A DNA stretch of 64,000 bases, taken from NCBI GenBank assembly GCA_004431415.1, contig QPMI01000160.1:101297-165296 (forward strand). The letters are read 5' to 3'. The notes below the pieces were generated by a model. That model was not told the DNA's origin and did no database searches. It saw nothing but the letters and a program-made list of their open reading frames with translations. The stretch is from Cyanophora paradoxa CCMP329. Taxonomy: Eukaryota; Plantae; Glaucophyta. Below, piece by piece: positions 5,627-64,000 of the stretch. How positions within the stretch are numbered: position 1 is the first letter of the stretch; every line of letters starts with the position of its first letter. The translations under genes were made by a program, and so were the position numbers.

Positions 5627-5886
5627 TTTTTTTTTGGTGAATTACCGGCCACAGTCTCTAGACACCAGCACTGCGGGGGCTGCCCAGGGGGCATAAAGAC
5701 AAAAAAGCAAAATAACTAAGACAAGAGCACGAAGAAAGATAAGACAAAGAGCCAAAATCGACAATAAAAAAGGAAAGACACAGAGCTCGAGACAGATCGA
5801 TAGCGAGAAGAGACGAAAGTGAAGTGTGGGCAGCCCCCGCAGTGCTGGTGTCTAGAGACTGTGGCCGGTAATTCACCAAAAAAAAA
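5627..5886. mobile_element. MITE-like foldback element with ~60-bp perfect terminal inverted repeats
   Basis: T9-GGTGAATTACCGGCCACAGTCTCTAGACACCAGCACTGCGGGGGCTGCCCA (5627-5686) is the reverse complement of 5827-5886; ~140-bp A-rich spacer; no coding capacity; no TSD identified. Confidence 0.6.
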
Positions 5887-18790: not shown

Positions 18791-21700
18791 ATGCGGAAAT
18801 CTGTGACTCTGCAAGCGGCCGGTGGAGCTCGCAGCTACAGGCAGCGCAAGATATCTGCTTTTTCCGATACATTTCGTTGCTTGCTTTCGCTGTCTTGCGT
18901 ACTCCATGCTATTCCTTCTAGCCAGTCGCAAGGTGAGGCTCAACGCAAAGATGAAGCTCAAGCTTAGGCCAAACATGTTTAATTTAAGCGTCCTCGCCTC
19001 CGGCCCAATAATTTTATGTATCACGCGCGCGAGCTCGAGCTCTGAGCATGCATATGCCTGAATTCACTTCGTCTTTCGGTCTTTCGGATCAACAGGTTAC
19101 TCTCGGTTGGTCGTGTCGGCCCCTCCCGCGGATTCCTTCCTTCTTGGTGGCATCATCACCCCCGATCCACGCGGCGTGACTTGCGGTATGTAGATGGTCA
19201 TGGAATCTAATATACGTGTACAATAGACGCCGAGAAACTGTGCCTTATCATTTTGAGTCTTCAGATCAGGGTCAGTCTGCCGCGGATCCGATTTTCCGAG
19301 GTCCGGATCGATATCCATTCCGTATCGGCATCATTTCAAATTTGCAAATTTGATTGCAGATGTTGACCCAAGCGGAACGGCGGAGTGCGAGCTGCACTGG
19401 ATGTGTGGAGACCCGGCTTTCTGCGGCAGCATCCAGCTCGCTCTGATTGGCGGGCCTAATCTGTACACGCGCGACGCTCGACTTTCCCCGGGTACGTTGA
19501 TCATGAGCGGCTCCGCGAATGACTAGCACCGTACATGTCTTTCTTCACATTCGCCACACCGCGCATGCATCCATTGTAATTATAATCGAACTTATCATGC
19601 ATGGAATGTAGGGGATTACGACGTCCGTCCAGTTCGTGTCCAGGTTGTGGATTCAGACCCTGCGTTTCCGGTACGCTAGCGCTGAGGCTCTTTTTTGAAG
19701 ATCGATATCTACAAATATCTTGATGTGATATATAATGATATACTGATCCATGCGCGCGCAATGCTGCCGTGTCCTGTAATCCATTTTTGAATACTCAGGG
19801 GATCGTCTACCACGTCTACCGGTACGATTACCCTGCCTCGAAGCGACCGACGCACTATTTATATATCTTCGGCTTCCGTTCAGATTTACCGTCAATCACA
19901 CTTCCGCTCTCAACTTTTCACTGGGCTTGACGCGCGACTTCGCGGTCCTCCATCAACAGGAAGCCACGCCGCAGAACCCGTCTCCGGGCCTCAACCTCGC
20001 TACCATGAAAGGAGTGGACTTCAACTTTACGCTGCATTTCTACCCCGGCGGCAGTAACGCAAACATCGACAACATCCGGCTGCTAGGCGCCTCCGCGGTT
20101 GCCGGTCCGTAATCGGACACTGATCATGAGACACTGAGACATGCTCGAGCATGCTCTTGATTACTTTTCTTTCGAATTCCACTGAACTTACGGCACGGTT
20201 TGCTTTTTACAGACGTAATCGATCCCTCAAGGCTCGATTCGCTCCCCTCGGTTTGCCGCTTCATGATCATGATCAGGTGTCCTTGTCAATTCGTTCTGAT
20301 TCGAGCACGCCCTCCTTTTCTAGGTAAGAGTGTTCAACTCAAGCAACTCCGGACCCTACCACTTGTACATCGGCGCCAGTACGTCTGCATGTATAGCGAA
20401 CATGCAGTGGAGCTTGCAAATGCAATTTTCGTAAAGGTTTGTGATTTAATTTATGCAGATCGAACCAGCAATGGGAACATCACCTACTCGTCGGCAATGC
20501 TCTCCATCGATCGCGAAAGCGCTCTTTCCGAGTTCCGCGTCAAGCACCGGCCGCTCAGGCTCCAGTCCGACGGCCAGCCTTACGCGTTCCAGTACGCGAA
20601 GGGAACGGACTACAGCCGAACGTGCGCCTACAGACTGAGTCTGAGATTAGATATGCAAATCAAATATTAATCGAAGAATTCGAACCCCTGCACGCTCAGG
20701 TCGGGCCCGTGGTACAACGTCACCCAGGTCTTTCTTGCGAATCCGGACTTCGCCTCGGACGGGTACGCGAAGCTTAAGCTTAAGTATAGCTTGCTCTGAT
20801 CTTAAGCGTTGTAATATTAATTATTACGCGTACAACATCGAATTCAATACTGTTGACTATAGCTTGCTCTGATCTTAAGCTTTATTATACGTACAATATC
20901 GAATTTATTTAACTTAGTAATACTGTTCTCGATCGCGCACAGATTCGAGTTTGCGATTGAGACGCGGAGTGGAAACCAGAAGATCGCGAACTTGTACACC
21001 GTACACGTCCTTCCTCTGCTTATCGCCGAAGTGGAGATGCGGGCCTTCACGCCGGTCCTGGTCGCCGAGCATCTCGCGTACCCTTTCTCGATCTCTTCTA
21101 CCGCGGAATACTTCCGCGTGTGGATGAAAGTCAACTCTGGCGCCCAGAGCACCTGGACGGCACTAAAGAGTTCAGACGGTAACTACCTCTGGACGCACTC
21201 CAAAGGCTTCAAGCAGTACGACTTTGTGTACAAAGCATCGTACGGGGTACGCACTGTGCACATTCGCCGAGCTACCGGTCCGGTTGACGCAACATTAATC
21301 GATATCGCCTCCAAACACAGTTCGGGACCAGAACAATCATAGTGGATCTCCTGCTGCCCTCCGTGCGCGATATGCCCTTTGACTTCGAGCTCAGATCGCC
21401 TTCGCTAACGACGCGAGGTAAAACGCGTGGCAAATCGAAACGCAGGCACTTTATCCCAGGCAAGTCGCCAACGAGCTACGCGAGCTCGCGTTCATCCCCT
21501 TCGCTAAGTGAGAATGCTCGCGCAGTGTCCAAGCAATCGTGAAGGGCTACGACTCCACTGCCTGGACTTCGGATGAACGCCCCATGCGCATCCTCAAGTG
21601 GGGGGGCGCAGGGCTGAACCTCCACGTGAGTCCAGGCAGCGCTACGTTCGACCTGCAAGATTTCGCAGGTGCTCACTCTAAACCTTCAATCACTTTCAGT

Positions 21701-45700: not shown

Positions 45701-48700
45701 GATAGTTATGTCGGGCCAGGCACAGACACAGCCTATCAATCGGTCTCGCATCTAGACCGAAACCCAGAAGCTACTAGGTGCGACTTGGCGTAATCGTCTT
45801 ATTTGTTAAGACTCCAACAACAGCCGGGCTTATAACTCTTCTTGCAATTGCAGGAGAATTGCGGAAGCGCTGGCACCGATGCTCAAGGTCATCACCTGTG
45901 CGCCGTAAGAATTTGCTAGAGCTTGCACGTCCACGTAAATCGGCAGCGCTCTAACTTTATAATTATTGATTACCGTTTCTCTATACAGCCGTCGGGTCCA
46001 ACACGCGCTCGTCAAAGTTCCAGCTTGTTCAGGCCGCTTCAGTCGGCACTGCGCTAACCCGTGTCGTCACCCGGTTTGTCGCGCCTTTCTTCTTCGCCAT
46101 ATATATAATTACTCGTCTAATTCTCAAATGCGTCCTTGCCCGCGTCGCGTGCACATTCAGCACTGGTGCATCGGAGCTCCAAACTGCACTGGCGGACGCG
46201 ATGCACTCGCTGTACAGCGCACTGAAATCTTGCGACGATGTCGCGGACGTTAGCGAGCTCGTCATCGCAGGAGCGGGTTCGCATGCGCCAATGCGATATT
46301 CGTGCACGTGTCGGCTTCCTGTGCTCACGAGAGAGCTTCGCAGACACTTTCCTCGGCTCGTCGTGGTGGCTTGCTGAGAATGCGAACGGGACGGACACTT
46401 CGCAGTTCGCCGACTCTGTTATGCGCATGTTCAAAACCTTCGCTTCCTTGTCTGTCCAATGCGGGACGTGCGGGGCGAACCCGTCCGTCAGCTCCGGGCT
46501 TCGCGTCGCCGTCTTCACCGGCCAAGTCTGCCACAGCCAGGAGGGCCAGGGAGACTTCGACGTCGGCGGGTCCGGCAAAGAGACTGCGGGCCTCGTCGTC
46601 CCCTCCGCGCTGCAGAAGCTTTCGAGTTCGTTGAACGGCACGGAGGGTACGCAACTCACGGTCTACGTGTACCCCCGCGGGCCATACCCCGAAGCCACGG
46701 CTGGACCTATCAACGGGACAAACACCTACGTAAAGTAGTGCGTCACGATCCCCTGATTATGAGCCAATGCAGACCTTGGGCGAGCTCTGAATCCTGGCTC
46801 GCGATTGCAGCAACGTGTCCAGCTACGTCATGGAGGTTGAAGTCCAGGGTCTCAAAGTCTCCAATCTAACGGAGCCCATGACGGTTCGGCTCTATTTCTC
46901 TTTCTTTGGCTCTATATGTATTTCTTGATCTGGCGTGGGTGTCTCGCTTATTACTTGCGAGTGCAGTTCCAAATCCCCCTTCGCATGCCCAACGGAGAGA
47001 TCATGAATGCAAAGCAGAAGCTCGAACTTATCTACTACGACAAGATCAACAAAGTGTGGATTAACTGGTCTGCAGCTATTTTGCTCTGTAATCCACGAGA
47101 GAAACAGAACAGATGACAATCTTTGTCACGCGCAGCGGAAATGTCTCGACGATTCTGGACAAGGCAGTTATCACTGCAGTTGCTTCCTGTAATCATCTCA
47201 CGCCGTTTGCAAGTGCGCAATATTCGATCAGGATTTGCAAGCTTATATTCAAGCTTAAGAGCGCTTCGGATTTTCCTGGCGAGCTCACAATGTGCGCCAC
47301 AGTTGGTGTGGGGGAGGTGATCACCCAGAAAGCAGCCACAGACGCGCAATCGCAAGGTTCCCTCTACAACTGGCAGACGTCGAAGTCAGATAAAGAGGGC
47401 TCAAGTGCTGGAGTCAATCCAGCGGCAGTGGCTGTCCCGGTGGCAGTTGGGGCTGTTGCGGTCGCACTGCTTGCCGCAGCCATCATCTACGTGAAGCACC
47501 GGGGGCAGGCGATGAATGCCCCCTTGTCTCAGCTACGTAGCTCCATGGGACGCGTTGAAGTTGCGACGATCGGCTCTGATCACTACGTGATCCGTCGAAA
47601 TGGCAAGAAGATCGGGACGGTTCCGCAGATACAGCACTCGTTCGAGATCACCGATGTGGACTTGGACTCGAACGCCGTCCTCGAAGTCTACGCTGTGAAC
47701 GGGAGCGGCCTCTCTGGCCCCCCGTCGTACCCCCTCTCCGTTGGATTGGCCTCGGACGCCGGCGCGGGGATTCACCTGACCGCGCGGCCGACGCGAGTCA
47801 ATGGATGCAGCGCAAAGCTGCTATGGAGCACCCCCACGCAGGCTTCCAAGATTTGGTCGAGGTGCTTTGATCGATTTCTGCGCTGATTGCGCAAGCCTGA
47901 AGCGGAGCTGAAGTCCACTTGCGCTCTGCAGGTTCGAAATCTTTATGAACGGGAATCGCATAGCTGCGGCTCCGGTCGGCAAGCGGGGCTCTGCGCTCAA
48001 CACGTTCTCAGTCCACAGCGTCCCGCCCATCGCCACCTTCCAGGCAAACTAGCCTATTCGTGCTCTTGCGCGGCCCTTCCAATTGTTCTGACCGGGTTTC
48101 CGGATCCGCGCCAGGTGATGGCGTTCTCGTCTCGCGATCGCTCCGGTTCGCCGCCAGTCGCCGCGAGCCGCGAGGTAGCGCTGCAGCCCTACGAACACGA
48201 GGCGGAGAACGACAAGGGCACCGACGAGGCCCCCAGCGCGGCGGCCCCCGGCAACCTGGAGCTGCGGCTGAGCAAGGTCGTGCGGGAACGGCAGGATCCT
48301 AGCTGCAAGCAGGCCTCATGCCTCCTTACGTGGAAAGCCCCCTCACGCCAGCTTTGGCAAAGGCCTGCAGATGATCTTGAACGGGGTTACAGTACCATCG
48401 CATCGCTCCGGCCTGATCAGCCCACGGCCGTGAATATGACCGCGCCTGTCTTGGAGGGAGTTGCCCGCACGTCGAAGGCACCCACGAACCTGCAGCTCAC
48501 AGATGTCGCGTCCGGTTTGAGCTTGCTCGGCGGCACATGTACAACGGGCACGCTCTCGTGGTCGCTGCCGACGACGGGCGCCCCTCTCGCGCACCGGGTG
48601 CTGCGCGACGGCGTCGAGATTGCGACTGTGCCGGGAACGCAGACGTCCCTCGGCGTGTCGGACCTGGCAAAGGGCTCGGTCTCGACATTCGTCGTGGTGG

Positions 48701-49137
48701 CGACCTGCGACACCGGCGCCGGCGGGGCCGAGTCGAAGCCGCTGATTGCTGGCATCCCTCGGGACCCGAACAGCGGCATTACCCTCACGGCGGTGCCCGC
48801 CGTGTCGAACAGCTCGGGATCGTCGACATCAGCGTTGCTGTCGTGGAACGCGTGCACGCCCTCTGCATCCGATGCTGTGACCTCGTACAAGGTGCTGGTG
48901 AATGGCAAGGTTGCGGCCGTTGCGAAGCTGCCGCCGTCAGGCATCCCGATGAACAGCTGGAACGTGAGGAGCTTGCCGCCGGGTGCGGTCGTAGAAGTCG
49001 CGGCGGTGTTCGCCTCGGGCGCCACGCTGTCGAGCACTCCTGTGCCCATCTCGAGCTCGGCGGGCAGCGCTAGCAACGGCATGCCTGGCGCCGGGGCCGC
49101 CCGCACGCCGCCCTTAATTCACACGTATACTCTGTGA
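18791..49137 (+). CDS. Giant (~30 kb, dozens of short introns) single-pass cell-surface receptor: signal peptide, Ig-like Cys repeats, REJ, GAIN/GPS, TM, cytoplasmic FN3-like domains (polycystin-1/adhesion-receptor-like ectodomain)
   Basis: Continuous chain of plus-strand exons separated by ~50-200 bp introns. Signal-like FRCLLSLSCVLHAIPSSQSQ (~18870-18930) spliced in phase to GYSRLVVSAPP. REJ motifs: GTGRRPLTFHWSC, VYARNFLG, IAGGNRVVSPTRPFILDASLSRDPD..QYRW, PGECTVSPPKGIALQT..FVITCSNW, VLPRG..IVVKDAFNA (42850-45390). GPS SCNHLTPFA (47185-47211). TM 47422-47493 followed by KHR. FN3-like segments to the stop at 49137. That this is a single gene is inferred, not proven. Confidence 0.75.
20785..20928. 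repeat. ~73-bp degenerate tandem duplication inside an intron
   Basis: TATAGCTTGCTCTGATCTTAAGC...CGTACAA.ATCGAATT...AATACTGTT occurs at 20785 and 20858. Confidence 0.7.
36970..41855 (+). repeat. Intragenic tandem repeat, ~1.63-kb unit (1530-nt phase-0 exon plus intron), about 3 units
   Basis: Exon starts at 38224, 39855 and 41471; introns at 38099-38223, 39754-39854 and 41385-41470. Exons 38224-39753 and 39855-41384 are near-identical; partial units on both flanks. Confidence 0.95.
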
Positions 49138-50785
49138 CGTATTTAACGCTAGTTAAAATTACCGTTACTTATTAGAACAAAATAAAAGCTACCTTTAGCT
49201 ATTGGGCTACAGAGAGTCATATATGTATACAACTATATTGTCCGGATCTCCGTTCCGAGTGTGACTCGCAATCTGAGCGCATGATGTGCGTACAAACGAT
49301 CTGTGTGCATCGGTACGGTGCGCGCCCTGTGCGCTGCGGGGCGCTTCGAGGACTCCGGGGGGCTGCGTCGCGGTTACCATTCCGGGTGGCAGCGGAGTGC
49401 CTTTAATTTAGCTCCGGAGGCTGTGTCACTGTACATGTTCAGATCTAGAATCGCACGGATTGCAGATAATCACGGCTGGCCACGGTGGCGCCGGCCCAAT
49501 GCATATGCATGTGCTGCACGGTCGTGGAGGCAGGCCCTGGCAGGGTGCACTTGCAATTAATTATTGCGACGTCGACTCTCCACGCCTTCGGCACCCCGGC
49601 CCTGGCCCCCTTCCCATCCCCCCCCCCCCCCCCCCCCCCCCGCCCCCTCCCCCCTTGAGCTTGCTCGGCGGCACATGTACAACGGGCACGCTCTCGTGGT
49701 CGCTGCCGACGACGGGCGCCCCTCTCGCGCACCGGGTGCTGCGCGACGGCGTCGAGATTGCGACTGTGCCGGGAACGCAGACGTCCCTCGGCGTGTCGGA
49801 CCTGGCAAAGGGCTCGGTCTCGACATTCGTCGTGGTGGCGACCTGCGACACCGGCGCCGGCGGGGCCGAGTCGAAGCCGCTGATTGCTGGCATCCCTCGG
49901 GACCCGAACAGCGGCATTACCCTCACGGCGGTGCCCGCCGTGTCGAACAGCTCGGGATCGTCGACATCAGCGTTGCTGTCGTGGAACGCGTGCACGCCCT
50001 CTGCATCCGATGCTGTGACCTCGTACAAGGTGCTGGTGAATGGCAAGGTTGCGGCCGTTGCGAAGCTGCCGCCGTCAGGCATCCCGATGAACAGCTGGAA
50101 CGTGAGGAGCTTGCCGCCGGGTGCGGTCGTAGAAGTCGCGGCGGTGTTCGCCTCGGGCGCCACGCTGTCGAGCACTCCTGTGCCCATCTCGAGCTCGGCG
50201 GGCAGCGCTAGCAACGGCATGCCTGGCGCCGGGGCCGCCCGCACGCCGCCCTTAATTCACACGTATACTCTGTGACGTATTTAACGCTAGTTAAAATTAC
50301 CGTTACTTATTAGAACAAAATAAAAGCTACCTTTAGCTATTGGGCTACAGAGAGTCATATATGTATACAACTATATTGTCCGGATCTCCGTTCCGAGTGT
50401 GACTCGCAATCTGAGCGCATGATGTGCGTACAAACGATCTGTGTGCATCGGTACGGTGCGCGCCCTGTGCGCTGCGGGGCGCTTCGAGGACTCCGGGGGG
50501 CTGCGTCGCGGTTACCATTCCGGGTGGCAGCGGAGTGCCTTTAATTTAGCTCCGGAGGCTGTGTCACTGTACATGTTCAGATCTAGAATCGCACGGATTG
50601 CAGATAATCACGGCTGGCCACGGGTGGCGCCGGCCCAATGCATATGCATGTGCTGCACGGTCGTGGAGGCAGGCCCTGGCAGGGTGCACTTGCAATTAAT
50701 TATTGCGACGTCGACTCTCCACGCCTTCGGCACCCCGGCCCCTGGCCCCCTTCCCATCCCCCCCCCCCCCCCCCCCCCGCCCCAA
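48517..50785 (+). repeat. 1138-bp near-exact tandem duplication of the end of the last exon and 3' flank of the giant gene
   Basis: The copy starting at 48517 recurs at 49655 (stops at 49137 and 50275); the junction sits in a poly-C tract. Confidence 0.95.
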
Positions 50786-51223: not shown

Positions 51224-53651
51224 TCACGAGCGGACCTCGAACTTTTCCACTGGGCAGCTGGCAAAGGCAGAGAGGCTATCCAGCTTGCGGATACCGTCCT
51301 GATCAACGTGAATCTTGAGGACGAGGCGTCGGATGCGGAGCGCGGAGGCGGCGAGCAAGGCCGCAGCGTCCGCGAGGCCGTCCCGCGCCCCCGGATCTGA
51401 GAGGTCGACGTCGGCCTCCAATCGAAGGGACAGCTGCAGGCGCCCGTCGGCAGCAAGGGCCAGCGGGACGAGCAGCGTGGGCCAGCGGGATGAGCGGCCG
51501 CGGCATGCGCAGCGATTCGTGTTGGCCTGCCGTTATAATTACCGTACGCAAGTGCAATACCGTAACGTTAGTATGTATCCATAGTAATTGTAAATTAAAG
51601 GCACCGATGCTCAGCTCGAGATCGGTGAAGGAGGAGGAACGGTCACCGGCTCCAGGGCCGCCACGAGGCCTTGGACCAGCGCCAGCTCGCCGTTGACGTT
51701 GCCGTCGATTTCCAGCGGCCCAACGCTGCGCAGCGCCGGGCAGGACCGTCGGACCCCAGAGCCTCCAGGTCCGCCCTCGTCTCGTCCGCTGCAAGCTGAA
51801 GACCCTCGTGCGAGCAGGCGGGAGAGGCTTCATGAGCATTGAGGACGGCGCGCATCTCCACAGGTCCCATAACCATCTGAAGAGACCAGCGTATACGTAA
51901 GCTCGTGCGCGCGAAGGGTCGCGGACCTAGGGCGAGCGGTGAGCGGACCGAGAAAGAGCTCCGGAGGCGTTCGAGGGCGACGAGGCGCGGGAGGGCGCGG
52001 AGGGCGGCCCCCGAGAGCCTGCTGCCAGCGCCGTGCATGAAGTGGAGCTGCCGCTTAATTTATAAGTCAAGAGACAGGCGAAGCGCGATATCGATGAACA
52101 TCGCGAGGAATATTAATACTATGATATAGACTTGAATATAACGCACTCTTTGAGAGTGAGCGCGACGGGGCTGGAAGCGAGGGCTTCGATGAGGGGCGAA
52201 GGGCCCAACGGCGCACGTCCAGAGGTCCACACGCCAAGATACTCGAGGGATGCGAGTCTGGCAACGCCCACGGCATCGCCGTAATCCCGCAGAGACAGCT
52301 CCAGCTGCAAAAACAGAGGAGAGGCATCAGCGCAGGGAATTACAGAAATTTGAAGCTTCGAAAGTCGTGTCCCGGACCCGCTTGAGATTCGGGAGACTCT
52401 GAGCGAGGGTGGTCACGACTCCCCGATCGATATCGGGGGAGCAGCCGTCCGTTTCGAAGAGAGACAGGCTCTCCAGCCCCGAAAAGGGGTGTAGGCGGTT
52501 CTCGAGATCGAGGGGGAAGCGGGCATCGTCGCAGGGGTACCCCCATGTTCCCGATCGCGTACCTGAGGGGTACGTAGCTCGGGGCAGGCGGCGGTTCGAG
52601 CTTCCCGAGGGGCAAGGGCGCTAAGCAGCCTCCCGAAGAAGCTGTCGCACTCGACAAAGACGTCGCTGAGGCCGCCGCTCGCCGCCATGCACGCCGTGAT
52701 GAACGGCATAAGTCCAGCAGCTTTGAACCGCAAATTTTAAATACTGCATATATATATCATGATCAACACTGCTCCACCGCCCCGCCCCCGCCCCCCAGCT
52801 CCCGCGCCCCGCCCCCGCCCCCCAGCTCCAGCACCCCGCCCCCGCCCTCCGGCTCCAGCGCCCCGCCCTCGCCCTCCGGCTCCAGCGCCCCGCCCCGCCT
52901 CCGGCTCTAGCGCCCCGCCCGCCCTCCGGCTCCAGCGCCCCGCCCCCGCCCTCCCGCCCCAGCGCCCCGCCCCGCCCTCCTGCTCCAGCGCCCCACCCCA
53001 CCCTCCGGCTTCCCCCTCCCTCCCCTCCTTTTTCACAGGACCAAGGACACCAACGCCTCAGGCCCTCCTAAAGCCGCAGATCGATAGCTCACAGCTAGGA
53101 TAAGATAGCAGGACGCCTTCCCTCTATGCCGCAGAGCCTCAGAGCTAGCCTAGGTGCCCCCCCATGTCGACGTTAACGACGGGGCGGCGGTTGTTGTCAT
53201 TAACATGAACATTGCCCGGTTGGGCTTTTGCAAAAAAAATCATGATCAACACTGATCACGTGCACTGAGCAGTGCATGGCATTCCTCACCTTCACGCTAA
53301 GCGACGCGCCCGGGGCCAGGCGAATCCACTCCCGCGGTCGGCCGGCGGCGACTGCAGCTGCGCCAGCTGCAGCTGCAGGCCTAGGCTCGTCCTCCTGACA
53401 GCGGACACGGACCAACTGGGCCGCGAGCTCGTCTAAAGCCTCTGCATTACGCGGGAATGCATATGGCCATAATTCGATGTCCAGCCGCCGCCAGACGACT
53501 GCCCCGGCCGCTTCGTGCCAGCGACGGCAGACCCGACGCGCGACCGCCGCGGCTCGGAAGCCGCCGGGCCGCTGCTCTCGAGGATTTGAGAGACAAGCAC
53601 GTCGGGCAGCTGATCGAACGGCGGCGCGCGATCGCTCGCCGAGTTCCCCAT
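51224..53651 (-). pseudogene. F-box + LRR-like protein gene with frameshifts (pseudogene or sequencing indels)
   Basis: MGNSASDRAPPFDQLPDVLVSQILE is in one frame, while the F-box second half RRVCRRWHEAAGAVVWRRLDI is in another (~53545). Downstream LRR-like exons: CPELRT, PFSGLESLSL, LAQSLPNLK, LASLEYLGV, LPRLVALERL. Two further shifts at homopolymers near 52550-52570. Confidence 0.6.
52770..52995. repeat. GC-rich ~24-bp minisatellite (CCGCCCCGCCCTCCGGCTCCAGCG-like) in an intron of the F-box gene
   Basis: About 8-9 degenerate units are visible. Confidence 0.8.
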
Positions 53652-53964
53652 GACAACCGCCGGGGCGCCGCGCGCCGCGGCCGCCGCGCGCGCGGTTAGG
53701 CGCAGCTAGCGCTAGCGCTGCGGTTAGGAATTTTATCGATCGAGAAGCTGTAGCTTCTTATAACGGAACCTCCGACATCTCTCTTAGCTGCGGATCTCCC
53801 TCGCAGCTGCCGATCGCAGCCGGCGAAGTGGTGCCGGGGGGGTACCGGTGCGGTTGGCGAGGCATCCAGCTGGAGCTCGCACACAAAACGAGGCGCGCTC
53901 TTTCCGGAATCACGCGCGGGGACGAGGTTTTGAATCTTCACGCCGGTGTCGCGGCGGGAGCGCC

Positions 53965-56900
53965 ATGATGCCGGCGCCCTCGGTGCTCTCCGATGTGCTG
54001 TCCGATGCGGGCTCGGAGGCGGGCCTGTTCGCGGGGCAGCTACGCAGCACGTCGAGCAACCGGGTCGAGGACGAGCCGAAGGAGCTCGGGGCCCGGGACG
54101 CGCTGGTCCGCCTGATCAAGCTCGTGCGGCCCGAGGCGCACCTCATCTGCCTTGGCACGGTGCGCATGCACGCCGCTCGCGCGCTTCGCGGCGCGGTCCG
54201 CCCGGAGCGCCCCTGACGCGCCCGGGACAGCTCGGCGCGATGTGCGCGAGCGCCGCTGTCCTGTGCATCCCCAACCTCGCGGGCAAGTGCGTACGCGCCG
54301 CTTGCGCTTGCGGGGCGCGCAAACGAGGCGCCGGGCGCGGGCCGACCGCGCGGCGCGCCTTGCATGCATGCAGGATCATCGACGGGATGTCGGTGAGCGC
54401 GGGGAGCGAGGAGGCCGGGCGCACGGACTGGTACCTCCTCCTCATCCTCTGCGTCGGCGCGGCGCTGGCGCTCGCCTCCTGGCTGGAGACCTTCTGTTTC
54501 ATCTTCGCCTCCTCCCGCTTCGCCGCGCGCCTCCGCAAGCAGGCGCGGGCGCCCGCCCGCCTCGCCCCCTCCTCTTCCTCCGCGCGCGCGCGCCCGCCCA
54601 CTCTCGATCGCAGGTCTTCGCGAACGTCCTGAGGCAGGAGGTCGCTTTCTTCGACGCGGCGCGCACGGGCGAGCCCCCCTAACCCCCCCCCCTTCGTCCC
54701 CCCCCCACAATCTGAAGCGTACCCCCCCAGGCGAGCTGCTCTCGCGGCTGGCGTCGGACACGAACGACGTGCGCGTCGCGGCGACGAACAGCGTCGCCTC
54801 CATCCTCCGCCACGGCGCCCAGGTGCGTGCTATAAGCTTTAAGCTATAAGCTATAAGCTGTATTAGCTAGTATAGCTTATAAGCTGGGGCGTTGTAATTA
54901 ACTGCTTTGGTGCTCTTCCCGGAGCGTAGCCTAGCGCCGGCGTCGTGTTTTGCCGCTTAGAGCCTAGAGCCTGCCTAGAGCCTGGCTCGGGCTTTACAGC
55001 GCCCCCGATCCTCCGCCACGGCGCCCAGGTGCATGCGGCGCCCGGACCCCCCGAGAGGCCCGGCCTGGCAGGTCTAGCAGGCGATGCTATGGTATCGTAA
55101 CGTAGTCTCGTCCGCCCCCCCCCCCCCCCCCCCCCCTCCTCCTCCTTCTCCCCCCTCCTCCCAGGTGCATGCGGCGCCTGGGGCCCCAGAAGGCCCGCGG
55201 CCGGCCCGGCAGGCCTAGCAGGCGATCCTGCGGTGCCGCTTACGTAGTCTCCTCCTCCTCCTCCTCCTCCGCCCGGGCTGCTCTCATGGTGCCGCTAACG
55301 TCCTCCCCTCCCCCCCTCCCCCCCCCCCCCCCCCAGGTGCTGGGCGGGCTGGCGCTGCTGGCGGCGATCTCGTGGCGCCTCACGGTGGGGCTCCTCCTCG
55401 TCGTGCCCCCCGTCTCCGTCCTTGCCGTCCTCTACATGAGCAAGGTCAGCCCCCCAAGCACCCCTCCACTGCTCTGGCCCCCCCTCTCTCTCCTGCCCCC
55501 CCTCCCGCTCCCCACTATCTATCTGTCTAGCTCCTTCCCGAACGCCCCTCCTCCCTCCCCGTACCCCTCCCCTCCCCTCCCCTGCCCATGTGAACCCCCG
55601 CCCCCTCCTTTCCCCCTTTTCCTTCCGCCTACACTCTCCCTCCTCCTTCCCCCTCCTCCCCCTCCCCTGCCCCCCGGGCCCTCCCCGCCTCCCCCACCCC
55701 CCACCCACTTCCCCCCCCCCCCCCGCATCTAGATGTAGCATCTGACCCCGGTCTGATCTGATCTGATCTGAGCCTCCCCCGCGCAGGTGATGCACGCGCT
55801 GGGGTCCGGCGAGTCGGCCGCCGTCGCCGCCACCGCCGCCGTCGCCGACGAGGCCCTCTCCTCCATCAGGTGGCCCCCGCCCCCTCCCCCCCCCCGTCCT
55901 GAAGAAGAAGGAGCCTGGAAGCCTAGCCAGTAGCCCCCGCCCCTCCCTCCCCGCCCCGCCCCGCCCGCCCCGCCCCGCCCGCCCCGCCCCGCCCCGCCCG
56001 CCGCCCCGCCCCGCCCCAAGGAACGAGAGCTTAGCGCGTCCCGCCAAGAGCCTAGCCATAGAGCCTCGCCGCCGGGGGCCAGCCTAGCTCAGGTGGCCCC
56101 CTCCCCGCCCCGAAGAAGAAGAAGGAGGAGCCTGGAAGCCTAGCCCCCGCCCCGCCCTGAGCCCGGAAGGGTCTAGGGCCCACCTTTAGCTGGCCGCCAG
56201 ACCTCTACACTCCTACCTCTTAGGCCTTCTCCTGCCGGCCTAGCTGGCTGCTAGACCTCTTCCCAGGCCCAACTTCTTTTAGGGCCTCTTGGGCCTTCTC
56301 CTACCGGCCTAGCCCTCTGTCGGGCCTAGGGGCCCTGACCCGCCCCGCCCTCTGTCTATCTACCTACCTGCGCTCTTCCCGTCCCCCCCTCAGCTTCGCT
56401 CGCCGGCAGGACGGTAGCTGGCGTTCTGCCGGGAGGGTCTAGGGCCCACCTCTAGCTGGCTGCTAGACCTCCTAAACTGCTGGCTGCCAGGCCCGGCTTC
56501 TTCTAGGGCCTCTTAGGCCTTCTCCTACCGGACTAGCCCTCGCCGCTTCGGGCCCCTCAGCTTCGCTCGCCGGCAGGACGGTAAAGGCGTTCTGCCGGGA
56601 GGGTCTAGGGCCCACCTCTAGCTGGCTGCTAGACCTCCTAAACTGCTGGCTGCCAGGCCCGGCTTCTTCTAGGGCCTCTTAGGCCTTCTCCTACCGGACT
56701 AGCCCTCGCCGCTTCGGGCCCCTCAGCTTCGCTCGCCGGCAGGACGGTAGCTGGCGTTCTGCCGGGAGGGTCTAGGGCCCACCTCTAGCTGGCTGCTAGA
56801 CCTCCTAAACTGCTAGCTGCCAGGCCCAGCTTCTTCTAGGGCCTCTTAGACCTTCTCCTACCGGCCTAGCCAGAGCTCTGTCGGGCCTAGGGGCCCTGAC

Positions 56901-59900
56901 CCGCCCCGCCTCGCCCTCTATCTACCCACCCCGCGCTCTTCCCATCCCGCCCTCAGCCTCGCTCGCCGGCAGGACCGTGAAGGCGTTCTGCCGGGAGGCG
57001 AGCGAGGCGGGGCGCTACGGGCGGGTCGTCGACGAGGCCCTCGGCCTGGGCCGCCGCGTCGCCTTCGGCTGGGCGTGCGTGGCGCCCCTTGGGCTTACTT
57101 GAGCTTATATTGGAGCTTAGACTTATATTGGAGCTTATATTGGAGCTTAGACCTCCATTGGAGCTCAGACTTCGGCTAGATTCTATTGTGTTTGGGCCGC
57201 CGCGCCGCCTTTCGGCTGGGCGTGCGTGGCGCCCCTCGGACAGACTTGAGCTTATATTGGAGCTTAGACTTATATTGGAGCTTATATTGGAGCTTATATT
57301 GGAGCTTATATTGGAGCTTATATTGGAGCTTATATTGGAGCTTATATTGGAGCTTACATTGGAGCTTAGACTTATATTGGAGCTTATATTGGAGCTTAGA
57401 CTTCGGCTAGATTCTATTGTGTTTAGGCCTGCTGGGCGTGCGCCCCGCCCCGCGCGGGCCGCTTAGGCCTCGCTTCTCCTGCCTTGTCCTACCTGGGCTA
57501 TTCCTTATGAGAGCTTATGAGCTTGGGAACGCTAAGGCCGCCTCCTAGTCCCTTAGGCCGCCGCTACGCTTCGCCTGCCCTGTCTTACGCCGGCCCATCA
57601 AACGCGCCCAGGGGGTACGACGCGGCGGTCTCGTTCGCGGCGGCGGCGGCGGCGGCGGCGCTGCTCTGGTACGGCACCGCCCTCGTCCGCGGCGGCACGT
57701 GCGCGCGATTTGTCTACCCCCCCGCCCTTCACCCCCCCCCCGCCCACTGTACCCTCCCCCCCCGCAGGATGACGCCGGGGCAGCTCTCCGCCTACTTCCT
57801 CTACGGTACCCCCACTCCCCACCTCCCTCCACCTCTACCCCCCTCTAACTTTTCCCCCCCAGGGGTATTCACGGCGGTGTCGCTGGCGCTGGCGGCGCGG
57901 GCGCTGACGGAGCTGCTCCGCGGCGTCGGCTCCGCCGCCCGCGTCCTCCTCGTCCGTCATTTCAATTGCCCCTACCCCCCACCCCTCCCCCCTAGCCACC
58001 CCCCCCCCCCCTAGTTTTGAATATCCCCGCCCCTCACATAGAGCTCCGCCACATGACACATGAGCCGCTCGACGCCTGCCTGCCCCGGCTGTTCTAACTC
58101 GCTAGCTAGCTAGCTAGCTAGCGCTGAGCCCCTCCCAACTAACTAAGACTACGTTTCGGGCAGCTTCTGGAGCGGGAGCCCCGGCTCGCCGTTGAGGGCG
58201 CCGGCGAGGTGCCCGCCCCCCCCCCCCCCCCCCCCCCCCTTTCCTTAGGGACCGCCTTTCCTGGGGCGGCGCCCCCCCTTAGAGAGGGAGCCCGCCCCGC
58301 CCCCTCCCCCTCCCCATCTCGCCCCGTCGCCCCTATCCGGCGCCGGGGGTACACCACCACCGCTCCCCTCTTCCTTAGCGCGACGGCCCGAGCTTATCTT
58401 GGGGCACCCAGCGCCCCGCCTCCCACCTTTGAGCCTCCCGGGGCGCAGGTACCCCCCCGCCCCGAGGGCCGCGTCCTCTTCGACCGCCTCTCCTTCCGGT
58501 ACCCCGCCCGCCCCGACGTCGAGGTCCTCAGGTGAGCCCGAGGCTTCTTCCCCTCCTTTTTTCGCTTGCTTTTTACCCCCCCCCCCCAACCCAGTGACGT
58601 CACGCTGGAGCTGGAGCCGTCGCGAGTGACGGCGCTGGTGGGGCCCTCCGGCGGCGGGTGCGGGCGGCCCAATCTTAGGACGACGGACAGAAAGAGAGAT
58701 AGGGTGGGCGACTGACTCCGGGGGGACGGGGTACAGGAAGAGCACGCTGGTGGCGATGTTGCTGCGCCAGGTGCGCCCCGAGGGGGTACACGAAGCACGT
58801 TGCTGGGGGAAGCTGCCCATCGCCCTGCCTACCTCGCTTTCCCAATCGTCTGACGCGGGCCCTTAGGGGGGGGGGAGAGAGTTAAAAAAAAAGGGGGGGG
58901 AAGAGGTAGATCTAGAGGGCCGGCGCGCGATCTTGCCCCGCCCCGCCCGCACTCCCGCCTGTCCGCCCCCCGCGCCTGACGCGGGGGCCGGGGGCCGGGG
59001 CGGCAGTACGACCCCGCGGCGGGGCGCGTGCTGATCGACGGCTGCGACGCGCGCCGACTGGACCCCCTCGTGAGCCCCGCCCGCCCCGCCCCCCCCCCGC
59101 CCGCGCTCCTTAGATCCCGGCCCGGCGACCTTAGATCCTGAGATCCTTATACCTATCCTTAGATCCTGGCCCGTCCTTAGACCTATACTCCTTAGATCTC
59201 CGACCCCCTCGTGCGCCCCGCCCGCCCCGCGGAGACGGGTTTGGCGAAACAAAGCGGAGGGTAGGGACCGGAGCAGAGATATAAGGGCTAAGGACCTTAA
59301 GGGTTTCTATCCTTAAACCTTAGAAGGTCCTTAGACCAATGCTTAGATCTCCGACCCTCTCGTGCGCCCCCCCCCCGCCCCGCGCCCGCGCCCCCGCCCG
59401 GCCGGCGGTTAGGAAGGGTCAAGGCATAGGAGTATTAAGCATAGGAGTTCGGGCTCAGACATCGGGCCCCGGCGCCCGGCTCGAGCGGCCGCGGGATCTC
59501 TATTTTTACGTACCCCCCATCGCGCAGTTCCACCACCAGCACGTCGGCGTCGTCTCCCAGGAGCCCGTCCTGGCGCGCGCGTACCCCCCTCTTCTTTCGC
59601 CCCCCCCCCCTTCCGAGGCTGACTCTACTCTGGCCCCCGCAGTTCGCGATGAGCGTGGAGGAGAACATCCGATACGGCACGCACCGGCCCGTCACCTTCG
59701 CCGACGTCCGTACCCCCCGCCCCGGCCCTCCCCCCCCCCTCCCCTCCCATCCCCCTCGTTGAATCCTCTAGGCCCCTTCCCCTTCCCCTACTCCCCCTCA
59801 ACTCCTTCCCGCCCCCGCCCCCCCCTCCTCTCCCCGCGCCCTAGTTGACACCTCTAGGCCGCTTCCTCTCTATCTCTTCCGCCCCCCCCCCCCCCCGTCC

Positions 59901-60862
59901 TCAACTCCTCCCCCCCCAACTCCTCCCCCCTTCGCAGGTGGAGCGGGCGGCGCGGATGGCGAACGCGCACGACTTCATCTCCGCATTCCCAGAGGGTACC
60001 CCCCGCTCCCCCGCTCCCCCCCCCTTCCTGGACTGACTCCGCCCCTCCCCCCCCCCCCCCCCCCCCCCAGGGTACGACACGGTGGTGGGCGAGCGGGGCG
60101 TGCAGCTCTCGGGGGGGCAGAAGCAGCGGATCGCCATTGCGCGGGCCGTCCTCATGGACCCCCGCATCCTCGTCCTCGACGAGGCGCGTACCCCCCGGGG
60201 CTCTAATCCGATCCGGTCCGATCGAATCTGAGAATAAGCGCTGGAGCGCCCTAGATTCTCCTCAGCCCTGCGTTCCTCCCCCCCTCTCCCTGCTTCTGAC
60301 CTCCCCGGGGGTACAGGCGACCTCGGCGCTGGACTCCGAGTCAGAGGCGGCCGTCCAGACGGCCCTCGGGCGCCTCATGGCCAACCGAACCGTCCTCGTC
60401 GTGCGCACCGTACCCCCCCTTTCGAAATTTCGAATTCGAATTTTCAAATTTGAATTTGAATTTTGGCGCCAGATCGCGCACCGGCTCTCGACGGTGCGGC
60501 ACGCGCACCTCGTGGCGGTCGTCTCGCGGGGCCGCGTCGTGGAGAGGGGTACGCACGACGAGCTCGCGGCCCGCCCGCGCGGCCTCTACCGCCGCCTCGT
60601 CCGCCGCCAGCTCGCCGCCGGCTCGGACCTCTCCCTGCCTTCGGCCGAGCCGCCCCGCGGGCCCTCGCCCGCCGTCCTCGCCGCCCCGCGCCTCGCCGGC
60701 GCCGGGGGCGGCCTGCTCGCCCCGCCCGACCTCAGCGAGGCCGGCGAGTCACACAGCGAAGAGGAGGGCGGGGGGGAGGAGGAGGAGGCGGGGGCGGGGG
60801 CGGAGGCAGGGGCGGAAGCGGACGGGAGGGCCGCTGGGCCCAAGGCACCCGCCGCCGCGTAG
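53965..60862 (+). CDS. ABC transporter subfamily B half-transporter (TMD-NBD; ABCB10/MDL1/TAP-like), about 20 exons
   Basis: Spliced motifs: RLRKQ|[19 protein letters not shown]|ELLSRLASD; ISWRLT; ADEALSSIR|TVKAFCRE; [21 protein letters not shown]; Walker A VGPSGG|GKST; Q-loop VSQEPVL|[12 protein letters not shown]; signature [20 protein letters not shown]; Walker B ILVLDE|ATSALD; H-loop IAHRLSTV. Confidence 0.95.
56170..56998 (+). repeat. Intronic 166-167-bp tandem repeat in which each unit contains the 3' splice site and first ~25 nt of the next exon
   Basis: CCTCAG.TTCGCTCGCCGGCAG|GAC.GT...GGCGTTCTGCCGGGAG with AG ending at 56409, 56576 and 56742, and the true acceptor at 56972. Confidence 0.9.
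57098..57400. repeat. 12-bp minisatellite (GAGCTTATATTG)n in an ABC intron, in two blocks
   Basis: Blocks at ~57100-57150 and ~57248-57400, separated by a copy of the upstream exon end; produces the spurious LILE-repeat ORF. Confidence 0.95.
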
Positions 60863-61101
60863 CGCGCGCAGAGGACAGTTGCATTGTCTCTCTTGTTCAT
60901 GATCAGTAATTTAAATGGTTTCGCGCGCCTTTTTTTCTTCGGGTGTTGGGGGGGGGGGAGGGGGGGGAGAGAGAAACTCATTTCGACCGAAATCTAGATC
61001 GAAAGATTGAGCTAGCTAGGTAGTCCCGTCCCGAGGTAGACGTCTGCGCGCCGCTGCCGCCCTCGCGGATCATTAAACTATTCAAAAGAAACAACCGCAG
61101 A

Positions 61102-62077
61102 ATGTTCGCGACGTATACGACGTTTCGGCGACCTGCTCCGGCCGAGTATGACGGAATCAAGGGCCAGGCGCGAGGTGCGTTCCTTTTAAATGTATCATGA
61201 ACGGCCCGACGACGTCAATTCACGCGGCATCGTCGCGCAGCAACCATCGGCGACCGCGCTTCGCACACATATGTGCAAAGCATCTCTAAGATCGATATAT
61301 CGCACTAGATCGAATATTGACTTCGCATGTATGCGCACTACCGCAGATCAATCAAGCCACCATCGTAGGCACTCCGACTCCGACCTTGACAACGAGATCC
61401 GGCGCGCAGCTGAAGGTTGGCCATGTTTGCCTGACGGGCGGAGTCTTTCACGGCACGAACATTTTCTCCGAGTGCCCGGGCCTGCGCACCGCTAAGGTTC
61501 GATGAATACTTTAATTTACTCGTAAAGTGCATCGTAAAGCACTTAGCGACTTTCCTCAGTACCGAATGACAGCATACAACATTCAGTACGACGCGAATTC
61601 TCGGACGTTCTTTGTGGAAGCGGACGTGAGACCGTACGGGTCTTCGCAAACTGTCCGCAAGAAGCTTCCGCCGTGTGATAAATGCATCGGGCGCCCCCGA
61701 ATGGTTGCTGTCATTCCGGTGAACTTGCCAATGCCAATTGCGTTTTCTGCTCTCATGTAATTTCTCTTGCACAGTCCCGCCCATTGATATCTTCAGGGAT
61801 CTCCAAAGATGTCATGGACCCTGTGCACGTGCGGGGCGTGGTCATTACGCCCACTGGTGACTTTTACCACGACCACGAATGCATTCTCCTCGAAAGCGCT
61901 GCAACATTGATCCTCGGGCCCGGGCTTTCGACATTCGAGGCGGCCAGACGCGGCTTCGACCCGTGCCCGCGGTGCTCTCATCTGATGCGCAGCCGGGGGC
62001 TGGTGTTGTATGCCCCCCACCCAATTATGAAGGAGGACCTAAAGCGTCGTCGCAATTTTCGGATTCAATATCAATGA
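61102..62077 (+). CDS. Small 5-exon protein with two Ada-like/H-C-CxxC zinc-binding modules
   Basis: A phase-consistent GT-AG model from ATG 61102 gives ...VCLTGGVFHGTNIFSECPGLRTAK|YRM...KLPPCDKC...|...VVITPTGDFYHDHECILL...STFEAARRGFDPCPRC, with a stop at 62077. Confidence 0.65.
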
Positions 62078-62181
62078 AAAATTGCTGCAGCTGAACAATG
62101 CATTTGAGCAAATATTAGCTATACTGCATCTCGAGATCTCAGAGTCTTTCTGCGTGTTTTCATCATTGCAGCTGCATCTCG

Positions 62182-62182
<1 letters not shown>

Positions 62183-62230
<48 letters not shown>
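62183..62230. repeat. Poly-G tract (~48 nt)
   Basis: Direct observation; similar G/C homopolymers occur at ~12000-12028, ~49618-49641 and the window end. Confidence 0.95.
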
Positions 62231-62482
62231 CTGTATAGCTAGCGCTAGCTGTAGGGTGAAGGGGCCCGGGGATGAGGCGGCGGTCGGCGTGAGCGGGGCC
62301 GAAGCGTTGGCGGCCGCGTGGGCCGCAGACGGTGCGCGGCGGTGGGCCGGAGACAGGGCTAGGGTGAAGGGGGGAAGGGCAGGCGGGGGAAGGGCGGCGC
62401 GGACGGCGCGGGCGGAGACCGGCCGGGATACCGGGGGCCCCGTGATCCGCGGGCAGGCAATCTGGTTCATTTACGCGAAGAC

Positions 62483-64000
62483 CTAATCGAGGGCCATGGG
62501 CGTCGCCTCGTCCCCCGCCTCGGCTGCCGCCGCCGCCGCCGCCGCCGGGCGGCCGAGCTGCCCGGCCCAAAGGCGTCAGCTGCAGGCCCGTCAGGGGCGG
62601 GGCCGGGGGCTACAACGGACCGCGGCGAGGGCGCGGGCGAATCGCTCGGCGTCGGCGGCGGAGGCGGCGTGCAGCTGGGGGCCGGCGGCGGCCGCCGGCG
62701 GGGCGGCCGAGAGCGGGCTCGCCTCGTGCGGGGAGTGCAGGCAGTGGAGGTGCATCGCCGAGCCCTGCGCACGATGCGCGGGGCGCGACGTCAGAAGGGC
62801 AGCGGGAGAGGTTCAAAGGTTTGTATGTGAAGGCGAGGCCAGAAGTGGGCGGAAAGCATTAGAAAAGACCGGAGAAGCGGACGGAAAGCATTGGAAAAGA
62901 CCGGCTAGACGGCTGGCCGCCGGCTAGTGCCGGGCAGCGTCCACTCTAGCCTCTGGCGGCGCGCACTAGCCGGCGGCCAGCCGTCTCGCAGCATCTTGGG
63001 AGCTTCTCGAAGGTTTGAGGGCCGCCGCCCGGCCGGTGCCCGCGGCTGGAGGCTAGCTATAGACCGGACGAAAGCTCAAGCTCTCTGCTTGCTTAGCCTT
63101 AGAAAAGCTCCCTAGCTCCTTCACGTGAAACGGACCTGCGTGTAGCTTTTCTAAGCATCTAGAGAGCTTTTTTAAGGCATAAGGCGCGTGAAACGGACCT
63201 GCATGTAGAGGGCCCGTGCGCGCGGCTGGAGGCTAGACTGGACGAAAGCTCTTTTAACTTATCTTCTACCTTACAAAGCTCTCTAGGCCTTGGCTAACAA
63301 AAGCACCCCAACGTAAAACGGACCTGCATGTAGAGGGCGTGCGTGGCCGGGAGCGCGTTCGAAGCGGAGGCGGCGGGGCGCTCGCCGCTCGGGGCCGCGG
63401 CCGGGACGAGGGAGGTCAGGCAGGCGACCTTGCCCCCCGACAGGAACTTGACGAGGGACACTGTCGCACTGCGCTCGCTCGCTCGTTCAGGCGCTCAGGT
63501 GCGTCTCAGGGGGGGTACAAGAAGGCTCGCCTGTCCGTGGCGCAGGCGGGTGTAGCCCGGTGCAGGCACCGCACCCGGTACGCAGACATCTGGGGGGTGG
63601 AGATTCAGCCGGGCGAAGGCGAGGGGGGGGGTAGAAGGGGGGGTACGGGGCGCGCCTCGATGCCCTTCGGGGCGGGCTTCCAGTGGAGGACGCTGCCCCC
63701 GCCTGCGCCCTCGGCTGCCGCGCCAGGTCAGGTGAGCAGTGCCGCTTAGAGTTGGAGCGGCAGAATCAGAGAATTATGACTGTTCTAGAACGGCGGGAGA
63801 GCAGTGGAAGAGTTATGTAAAGGTGAGAGCGTCTTAGAGCGTGTGCCTAGAAGAGCGTCTTAGAATTGAAGCGGCAGTGGCGGCACCTGCGTGCCCGCGG
63901 CGGGGCGGGGCGGCGTGCGCATCGGCCGCGTGGAGCAGGACGACGTCGTACGCCCCCCCGTCCTGCGAACGAAGGCGGTCGGTGGGGGGGGGGGGGGGGG
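62483..64000 (-). CDS. INTS13: Integrator complex subunit 13 / Asunder-like protein, 3' part (5' end beyond window)
   Basis: Exon peptides GGAYDVVLLHAADAH, SVLHWKP, CLHRATP..SATVSLVKFLSGGKVACL, THALYMQ|GSAMHLHCL and ERFARAL parallel, in order, my recollection of INTS13 motifs (NYDVELLH..AH, LKW, AYRISP..PSSCLTNFLLNGRSVLL, SHMLSSHGGEIFLHVL). Probable stop at 62483-62485. Confidence 0.55.

Follow-up and report, generated by a model that had tools for sequence, protein, structure and literature searches.

Copies of splice junctions within the longest introns of an ABC transporter gene of Cyanophora paradoxa

How does an intron come to contain copies of its own splice junctions, and do these copies influence the splicing of the transcript? 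The question is raised by an ABC transporter gene of the glaucophyte Cyanophora paradoxa CCMP329, which lies near the end of a stretch of 64,000 nt of contig QPMI01000160.1 (assembly GCA_004431415.1; positions 101,297 to 165,296, forward strand), referred to below as the window. Over its last 10 kb the window has a GC content of 63-72%, and the introns of this region contain long C-runs on their sense strands. Several introns of the gene contain internal copies of a flanking exon end or exon start together with its splice site, which we call echoes. They were found only in the four longest of the 19 modelled introns (1103, 537, 514 and 458 nt). Probably, local DNA duplication in fast-changing introns left the echoes behind as scars, which have been retained because they are harmless.

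Junction copies in the ABC transporter gene

The gene and its echo families (F1 to F7) are located as follows:

54366..60862, plus strand: ABC-B-type half-transporter gene, modelled part (20 exons, 19 introns), stop codon at 60860-60862
54802..55036, plus strand: F1, real exon end and donor at 54802-54830 (junction after 54822), echo at 55008-55036
55024..55336, plus strand: F2, intron-like units at 55024-55159 and 55160-55295, followed by the real 3' end
55866..56145, plus strand: F3, real donor region at 55866-55928 (junction after 55869), echo at 56088-56145
56163..56998, plus strand: F4, tandem array of four units of about 274, 166, 167 and 237 nt (unit counts as assembled)
57047..57454, plus strand: F6, units U1 (57047-57192) and U2 (57193-57423) and partial unit U3 (57424-57454) (unit counts as assembled)
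59061..59381, plus strand: F7, real exon end and donor at 59061-59089 (junction after 59069), echoes at 59202-59230 and 59353-59381

All the echoes listed in a preliminary description of this DNA were found in the sequence at the positions given there, and their matches go far beyond what splice-site consensus or base composition would give. When the 20-mers spanning the junctions of the ABC gene were aligned with the introns, they matched at 15-19 of 20 positions within their own intron and at no more than 15 of 20 in the other 18 introns, which excludes chance. A few mid-exon control windows scored 17-18 of 20; most likely, these are windows located within the exon parts of the same echoes. 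The proposal that the echoes are products of duplication which lengthen the introns was also upheld: F4, F6 and F2 are tandem direct repeats (96%, 94% and 77% identity, respectively), and the set of echo-bearing introns coincides with that of the four longest.

In families F2, F4 and F6 the duplications are clean and tandem, with units of 136-274 nt whose edges carry 6-9 nt of microhomology; these head-to-tail units contain an exon end or exon start together with its splice site. Each unit of F4 ends with an acceptor (...CGCCGGCAG/; a slash marks the splice junction) followed by 26 exon nt, and the real acceptor is located in the last unit (exon start 56973). The segment composed of the acceptor and these 26 nt (56950-56998) has upstream copies at 56387, 56554 and 56720, with 90-94% identity. 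Tandem Repeats Finder detected a period of 166 nt (2.9 copies, 96%, score 923), BLAST aligned 56263-56436 with 56820-56998 at 88%, and sub-repeats are present within the array. The F4 edges show an 8-nt microhomology, CCGG(A/G)AGG in the intron and CCGGGAGG in the exon. In two of the three acceptor echoes (56387-56435 and 56720-56768) the exon-derived GTGAAGGCG has become GTAGCTGGCG, creating AGCT.

The units of F6 open with up to 28 exon nt and the donor GGGC/GTGCG, the real junction being located after 57074. The identity between 57047-57149 and 57193-57296 is 94% over 104 nt, and a third, partial copy is present at 57431-57454. U2 carries an expanded 12-nt minisatellite, GAGCTTATATTG, and the edges lie at T(G/A)GGCC (TGGGCC in the exon, TAGGCC in the intron). 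In F2, the sequence CCCAGGTGCATGCGGCGCC (at 55024 and 55160) heads two units of about 136 nt, each of which begins with CCCAG/GTGCATGCGG and ends with a poly-C tract and CCCAG (77% over 116 aligned nt, 55024-55132 versus 55160-55274). The 9-nt sequence CCCAGGTGC is common to the donor and acceptor junctions of this family, and each unit is a complete GT...poly-C...CAG module. F2 is evidently a tandem doubling of the whole intron between two copies of CCCAGGTGC.

The remaining families (F1, F3 and F7) are without clear microhomology and have a different layout, in which short copies are separated by filler. In F1, 54802-54830 and 55008-55036 are identical at 28 of 29 positions (21 exon nt and 8 intron nt) with sharp edges, and the copies are 177 nt apart, separated by an unrelated filler in which AGCT and TATA palindromes are abundant. 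This junction recurs in part at 55160, as CCCAGGTGCATGCGGCGCC. In F3, the sequence TCAG/GTGGCCCCC occurs at 55866 and 56088 (13 nt exact), with only four exon nt (TCAG) duplicated; when indels are allowed, the match extends to about 60 nt (55879-55928 versus 56096-56145, 84%). In F7, 59061-59089 and 59202-59230 share 28 of 29 positions, the filler between copies is of the CTTAGATCC type, and the second and third copies also have the preceding 11 nt in common. The real junction of this family (59069/59528) was placed by reading frame and the GT-AG rule.

Such repeats could in principle be an assembly artefact, i.e. wrongly expanded repeats or haplotypes, an explanation that we consider extremely improbable. 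In its favor, 56345-56880 and 57127-57371, within the arrays of F4 and F6, are covered by none of the short-read contig pieces listed for two other samples, and the copy number of these arrays is unconfirmed. On the other hand, single DNA contigs from these samples contain other echoes: (i) both copies of F1 lie within one contig in each of the two samples, with no differences, (ii) the F3 echo lies in a contig covering 56026-56344 in both, and (iii) all three copies of F7 are present in contigs of both. These stretches show 0-1 differences. DNA joints inside introns were also considered as possible alleles; their sides are 19-25 nt long and of C-rich low complexity, and they were treated as cross-matches.

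A further family, F8, is found in the neighboring gene on the opposite strand:

63128..63338, minus strand: F8, predicted exon end and donor at 63338-63312, echoes at 63213-63187 and 63150-63128

The predicted junction of F8 (...CTACATGCAG/GTCCGTTT, between 63324 and 63323) was placed by the GT-AG rule and by the reading frame, which ends at CAG/GTCCGT and continues beyond an AG some 550 nt downstream. The segments 63312-63338 and 63187-63213 are identical at 26 of 27 positions, and 63128-63150 is a third copy. The units also have in common the 21-nt block GTGC.CGCGGCTGGAGGCTAG (63036-63056 and 63216-63236), 180 nt apart. The preliminary description had named this gene INTS13-like, a label that gained no support: six exon-sized pieces matched no Pfam family at E values up to 1, short pieces being a weak test. 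Two further repeats lie in the long intron of the gene, a tandem repeat of 32 nt (62841-62904) and a perfect inverted repeat of 24 nt (62907-62930 / 62963-62986), and an uninterrupted run of 48 G is located at 62183-62230.

Splicing of the echo-bearing introns

Assembled RNA contigs of two runs, 1713 and 1688 letters long, were used to examine the exon structure of the ABC gene; rare isoforms would be invisible in such contigs. Contig pieces map to 54400-54538, 54730-54826, 55344-55442, 55785-55866, 56970-57075, 57862-57951 and 58447-58528; the letters between mapped pieces match the intervening small exons, and the remaining 123 letters correspond to exons 57612-57698 and 57768-57805. In the contigs of both runs, 54823-55336, 55870-56972 and 57075-57611 are each removed as a single intron, and the isoform using the outermost sites is the only form present.

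The claim that the reading frame is kept intact was borne out by this splicing of the outermost sites and by the exons themselves, since the 19 exons of 54614-60862, joined by script, form one continuous ORF to the stop at 60860. The joined translation carries the Walker A, signature and Walker B motifs, including ILVLDEA and ILVLDEATSALD. Exon boundaries were set by the GT/GC-AG rule, and Pfam, run exon by exon, assigned ABC_tran to one exon (E=4.8e-10) and gave weak, co-linear ABC_membrane matches on two others (profile positions 129-163 and 192-222), the gap between which is filled exactly by the intervening exon. The order of domains, a transmembrane domain followed by a nucleotide-binding domain (NBD) with its motifs, is that of an ABC-B half transporter. 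The first modelled exon (54366-54542) is based on the RNA contig piece 54400-54538 and a reading of the sequence. The start codon is probably located near 53965, with two additional short introns upstream of the modelled part.

The lengths of the modelled introns are, in order, 71, 62, 514, 342, 1103, 537, 69, 57, 212 and 240 nt (introns 1-10) and 63, 79, 236, 458, 70, 232, 75, 133 and 72 nt (introns 11-19); a length of 57-79 nt is that of 11 ABC introns. Four of the 19 introns have a GC donor (GC-AG; 54543, 54669, 59573 and 60184). No structured RNA gene was matched in the long introns by Rfam at gathering score (53500-64000). In a metagenome scan for orthologous loci, the last exon matched generic ABC transporters only, probably bacterial, with 41-71% identity over conserved NBD residues and none from this lineage, and two exact-ORF look-ups found no record.

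The echoes leave arrays of decoy splice sites, as had been proposed, and judged by sequence these decoys would be competent. Echoed donors constitute seven of the eight best of 89 intronic GT sites (7.3-8.7 bits, with a median of 7.7 bits for real donors), as scored with a matrix that was derived from the 19 real donors, including the parents of the echoes, and is thus slightly circular; its first-intron window is one base early, which leaves the ranking of the decoys unaffected. Use of any of the ten decoys (seven donors, at 55029, 55165, 56093, 57222, 57438, 59211 and 59362, and three acceptors, ending at 56409, 56576 and 56742) would add 141-563 nt to the mRNA and introduce a stop within 7-26 codons. 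Mis-splicing would therefore be unproductive and would yield no variant protein.

Two of the sites bring a 3' splice signal next to a regenerated 5' splice site of the form CAG/GT, i.e. they combine a polypyrimidine tract and AG with a following GT donor consensus, as expected of recursive splice sites. At 55164/55165, a C/T tract ending in CCCAG (55107-55164) is followed by GTGCATGCGG, with a donor score of 8.6 bits; the tract is about 50 nt long and is accompanied by a branch-like TAACGT, copying the real 3' end. The second site, 56092/56093, lies in a segment (56088-56093) that reads CTCAG/GTGGCC. The former could act as a recursive splice site.

It is conceivable on these grounds that the echoes have been selected as working splice sites, either for recursive ("ratchet") removal of the introns or as decoys feeding nonsense-mediated decay to set the level of expression. 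Such a role would be in keeping with the donor-like scores of the echoes, with the two CAG/GT sites (the former with its C/T tract and TAACGT), with the early stop produced by every decoy and with the better preservation of the junction copies of F1 and F7 than of the filler between them. We nevertheless regard it as improbable. The assembled RNA contigs contain only the outer-site isoform, and the exon ends of F6 and F7 lack AG and so cannot act as recursive sites. Moreover, the exon parts have decayed in two of the F4 decoys, and the units of F4 and F6 are 94-97% identical throughout, which suggests recent origin rather than conservation.

Four introns of this one gene together hold seven decoy donors that equal the real ones in strength, as well as three decoy acceptors, and the assembled transcripts show the correct sites only. 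The locus is therefore a natural test bed for asking how a spliceosome that recognizes short introns as units chooses among identical sites.

Origin of the echoes and placement of the duplications

Two kinds of event may account for the echoes as scars of local duplication. The first would be microhomology-mediated tandem duplication of 136-274 nt (F2, F4 and F6), arising by replication slippage, template switching or unequal exchange, with one end located in the intron and the other within the exon, at a depth of between a few and 28 nt. Microhomology was indeed found at the breakpoints: CCGGRAGG in F4, TRGGCC in F6 and CCCAGGTGC in F2. The second would give rise to the junction copies of 23-62 nt with 36-177 nt of filler between them (F1, F3, F7 and F8), in which fast indel turnover is envisaged; these resemble either double-strand-break repair that leaves an insertion between direct repeats, or a decayed tandem unit.

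The copies of the second kind measure 27-29 nt in F1, F7 and the main pair of F8, and up to about 62 nt in F3. Short tails excepted, their filler cannot be aligned with the sequence following the next copy. It is composed of short palindromes (AGCT, TATA, CTTAGATC and CTAG) and small internal repeats, and has changed by many indels and few substitutions. The 21-nt block shared by the units of F8, 180 nt apart, indicates that at least some of F1, F3, F7 and F8 are tandem units in which insertions and deletions have remodelled the interior.

A duplication that spans one splice junction would place a second copy of this junction inside an intron whose limits are still the outermost donor and acceptor. 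The intron would then be longer by one unit, with no change in the mRNA. Duplications within exons would be removed by selection. Since the introns were originally short (about 60-280 nt), most of the surviving duplications of this size would cross a junction. We infer the duplication mechanism, the near-neutrality of its products and the removal of mis-spliced RNA by nonsense-mediated decay. The introns described here would represent one concrete route from short to long introns, the junction-crossing duplications having no effect on the protein while the outer sites prevail.

The preliminary description had gone further and attributed the echoes to a junction-centred duplication process. This part was not sustained by a simulation, in which the duplicated units were removed as an approximation of the ancestral gene (giving introns of 172, 282, 160 and 166 nt instead of 514, 1103, 537 and 458 nt) and random tandem duplications of the observed sizes were introduced. 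Duplications were considered tolerated if they did not lie within an exon and did not cross several junctions. Exactly one junction was crossed by 75% of the tolerated duplications of 136-237 nt and by 26-40% of the copies of 27-62 nt. A junction is included in about 7 of the 11 families of the window, a share that fits random placement followed by selection, so that a junction-targeted process is not needed.

Other genes of the window point in the same direction. The segments 9660-9753, 11101-11179 and 20785-20880 are AT-rich and palindrome-rich (CTTAAG, TTAATTAA and AGCT) and resemble the intron fillers. They contain direct repeats of 16-23 nt, 63-73 nt apart (9660/9733, 11101/11164 and 20785/20858), which are apparently junction-free (no exon model is available for these genes). 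Repeats of this kind in introns of other genes indicate that the process is not confined to junctions.

Several observations weigh against harmless local duplication with random placement. The exon parts of the junction copies are 4, 5, 9, 15, 21, 26 and 28 nt, i.e. all of 28 nt or less, with a median of 48 nt expected from random placement; the probability of 28 nt or less is 0.29 per tandem event and about 0.007 for four events jointly, in a post-hoc count. No exon-only segment copied into an intron was found in the ABC introns. The echoed donors are undegraded, which would not be expected of old neutral decoys, and the junction copies of F1 and F7 are 96% identical with flanks that cannot be aligned. 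Furthermore, local repeats are almost absent from the window outside introns. A mechanistic bias could explain both the short exon parts and the lack of exon-only copies, and so could selection against strong decoys. Should the pattern extend to the whole genome and the short exon part hold, it would imply either junction-proximal DNA fragility or strong selection on the context of decoys.

A mechanistic bias is the essence of an alternative that we consider rather unlikely, according to which breaks or stalled forks are concentrated around splice junctions, at distances of up to about 30 nt. They might be caused by the poly-C/poly-G tracts beside splice sites, by R-loops or by cleavage at the ends of transposon-derived introns, and the junction copy and its palindromic filler would be products of the subsequent repair, either by synthesis-dependent annealing or by polymerase-theta end joining. 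The size of the exon parts (28 nt or less in every case) agrees with this explanation, as do the sharp-edged 27-29-nt copies with unrelated filler in F1, F7 and F8, the richness of the fillers in AGCT, CTTAAG and TTAATTAA palindromes, and the C-runs beside many donors and acceptors, GTACCCCCC being present 22 times as compared with 0.36 expected. However, the share of junction-crossing events matches random placement, the breakpoints of F1, F4 and F6 lie away from C-runs, and other introns contain the apparently junction-free repeats mentioned above. In addition, no dispersed element family or transposase signature accompanies these introns in the window, and the sample comprises only about 11 events. 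We find it unlikely that such junction-preferring break-and-repair (less than about 30 nt from the junction), possibly triggered by poly-C/G tracts or by the ends of transposon-derived introns, expands the introns and that the resulting decoy or recursive arrays tune expression by unproductive splicing.

The 22 sites of GTACCCCCC in the window include those at 57806, 59581, 59710, 59996, 60188 and 60410 (plus strand) and at 63510 and 63638 (minus strand). In both of the genes studied the motif is on the sense strand, most of its sites coinciding with the 5' ends of introns or following them closely, and its complement, GGGGGGTAC, precedes some of the acceptors (GGGGGTACAG/).

It was also considered whether an introner-like or retroelement-like insertion lengthened the introns, the junction copies being unusually long target-site duplications. 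The copy-filler-copy layout with repeats of 27-29 nt in F1, F7 and F8 is compatible with such an event, and one GC-AG intron of the ABC gene (60184-60316) has terminal inverted repeats (GTACCCCCCGGGG / CCCCGGGGGTAC) with AGGCG on both sides. Nonetheless, this origin appears very improbable. The target-site duplications of introners are of 3-9 bp (PMC9860276), in contrast to the 27-62 nt observed here, the fillers have neither terminal inverted repeats nor poly-A tails, two GTACCCCCC...GGGGGGTAC introns are alike at their termini only, with no internal similarity, and F2, F4 and F6 are plain tandem repeats. The terminal features of introners (a target-site duplication of 3-9 bp and/or terminal inverted repeats) were not found in the echo-bearing introns. 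Among 18 introns checked by eye, three have flanking direct repeats extending beyond the splice consensus (7, 9 and 5 nt). Self-comparison of the 64-kb window, which revealed no dispersed copy of the echo-bearing introns or of their fillers, also spoke against a mobile-element origin. Intron 60184-60316 itself resembles a small inverted-repeat transposon, and its termini, but nothing else of it, recur in a similar-looking segment at 8704-8833.

Three other repeats of the window were noted: (i) a 27-nt C-rich minisatellite (about 9 copies, 52771-53010) upstream of the ABC gene, (ii) a 1138-nt tandem duplication with 99.8% identity (48517-49638 versus 49655-50778) near the 3' end of a large receptor gene and (iii) a perfect 60-nt inverted repeat (5627-5686 / 5827-5886).

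Comparison with known systems

Recursive splice sites (ratchet points) occur in long animal introns. The predicted sites at 55164/55165 and 56092/56093 would resemble them in the position of a 3' splice signal beside a regenerated 5' splice site, and would differ in that the introns concerned are only 0.5-1.1 kb long and the sites have apparently arisen by duplication.

Introners are transposons that create introns (PMC9860276, PMC12130899). The echo-bearing introns share with them the occurrence of intron-associated repeats in a GC-rich protist genome, and the ABC gene contains the above-mentioned intron with terminal inverted repeats and a 5-nt flanking repeat. In contrast to introners, no dispersed family of the echo-bearing introns was found in the window and the lengths of the repeats fall outside the range of 3-9 bp. 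In Daphnia, insertions between direct repeats at new intron sites have been attributed to the repair of staggered double-strand breaks (Li et al. 2009, as discussed in PMC2809761); according to PMC2809761, the direct repeats at the splice sites of new introns are of at least 8 bp, whereas those described here are of 27-29 nt, lie in an existing intron and are serial.

The closest parallels are tandem duplications that multiply or create introns, as treated in PMC4974935, which also summarizes Rogers (1989), Gao & Lynch (2009) and Hellsten (2011). As presented there, the cases of Gao & Lynch (2009) and Arabidopsis TOUCH3 are, like ours, within-gene tandem duplications that include junctions and preserve the protein. 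In the ABC gene, unlike in those cases, the exon part is very short, the additional junctions are apparently unused, and introns are lengthened with no exons or introns added, at five junctions of one gene. In the model of Rogers (1989), as outlined in the same text, tandem duplication of a segment containing AGGT gives rise to an intron. F2 would be similar in having CAG/GT at both unit ends, each unit being a complete GT...AG module, and different in that an existing intron, not exon sequence, was duplicated and no intron was created at a new position. All of the echoes lie within existing introns, and no intron made of exon sequence was found.

The gain of an intron in the potato RdRp gene involved tandem duplication of the 3' end of an intron together with the start of the downstream exon (PMC4974935). 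F4 is built in the same way, its unit being composed of the 3' part of an intron, the acceptor and the 26 nt with which the exon begins. The potato gene uses the upstream acceptor, and its new intron arose through a cryptic donor, whereas in the RNA contigs the array of F4 is removed as one intron and the last acceptor is used.

A literature search found no paper on such a pattern in a GC-rich protist. Growth of introns by junction-crossing duplication is already known; what is seen here is its high density, and of greatest interest is how densely strong, unused decoys are packed.

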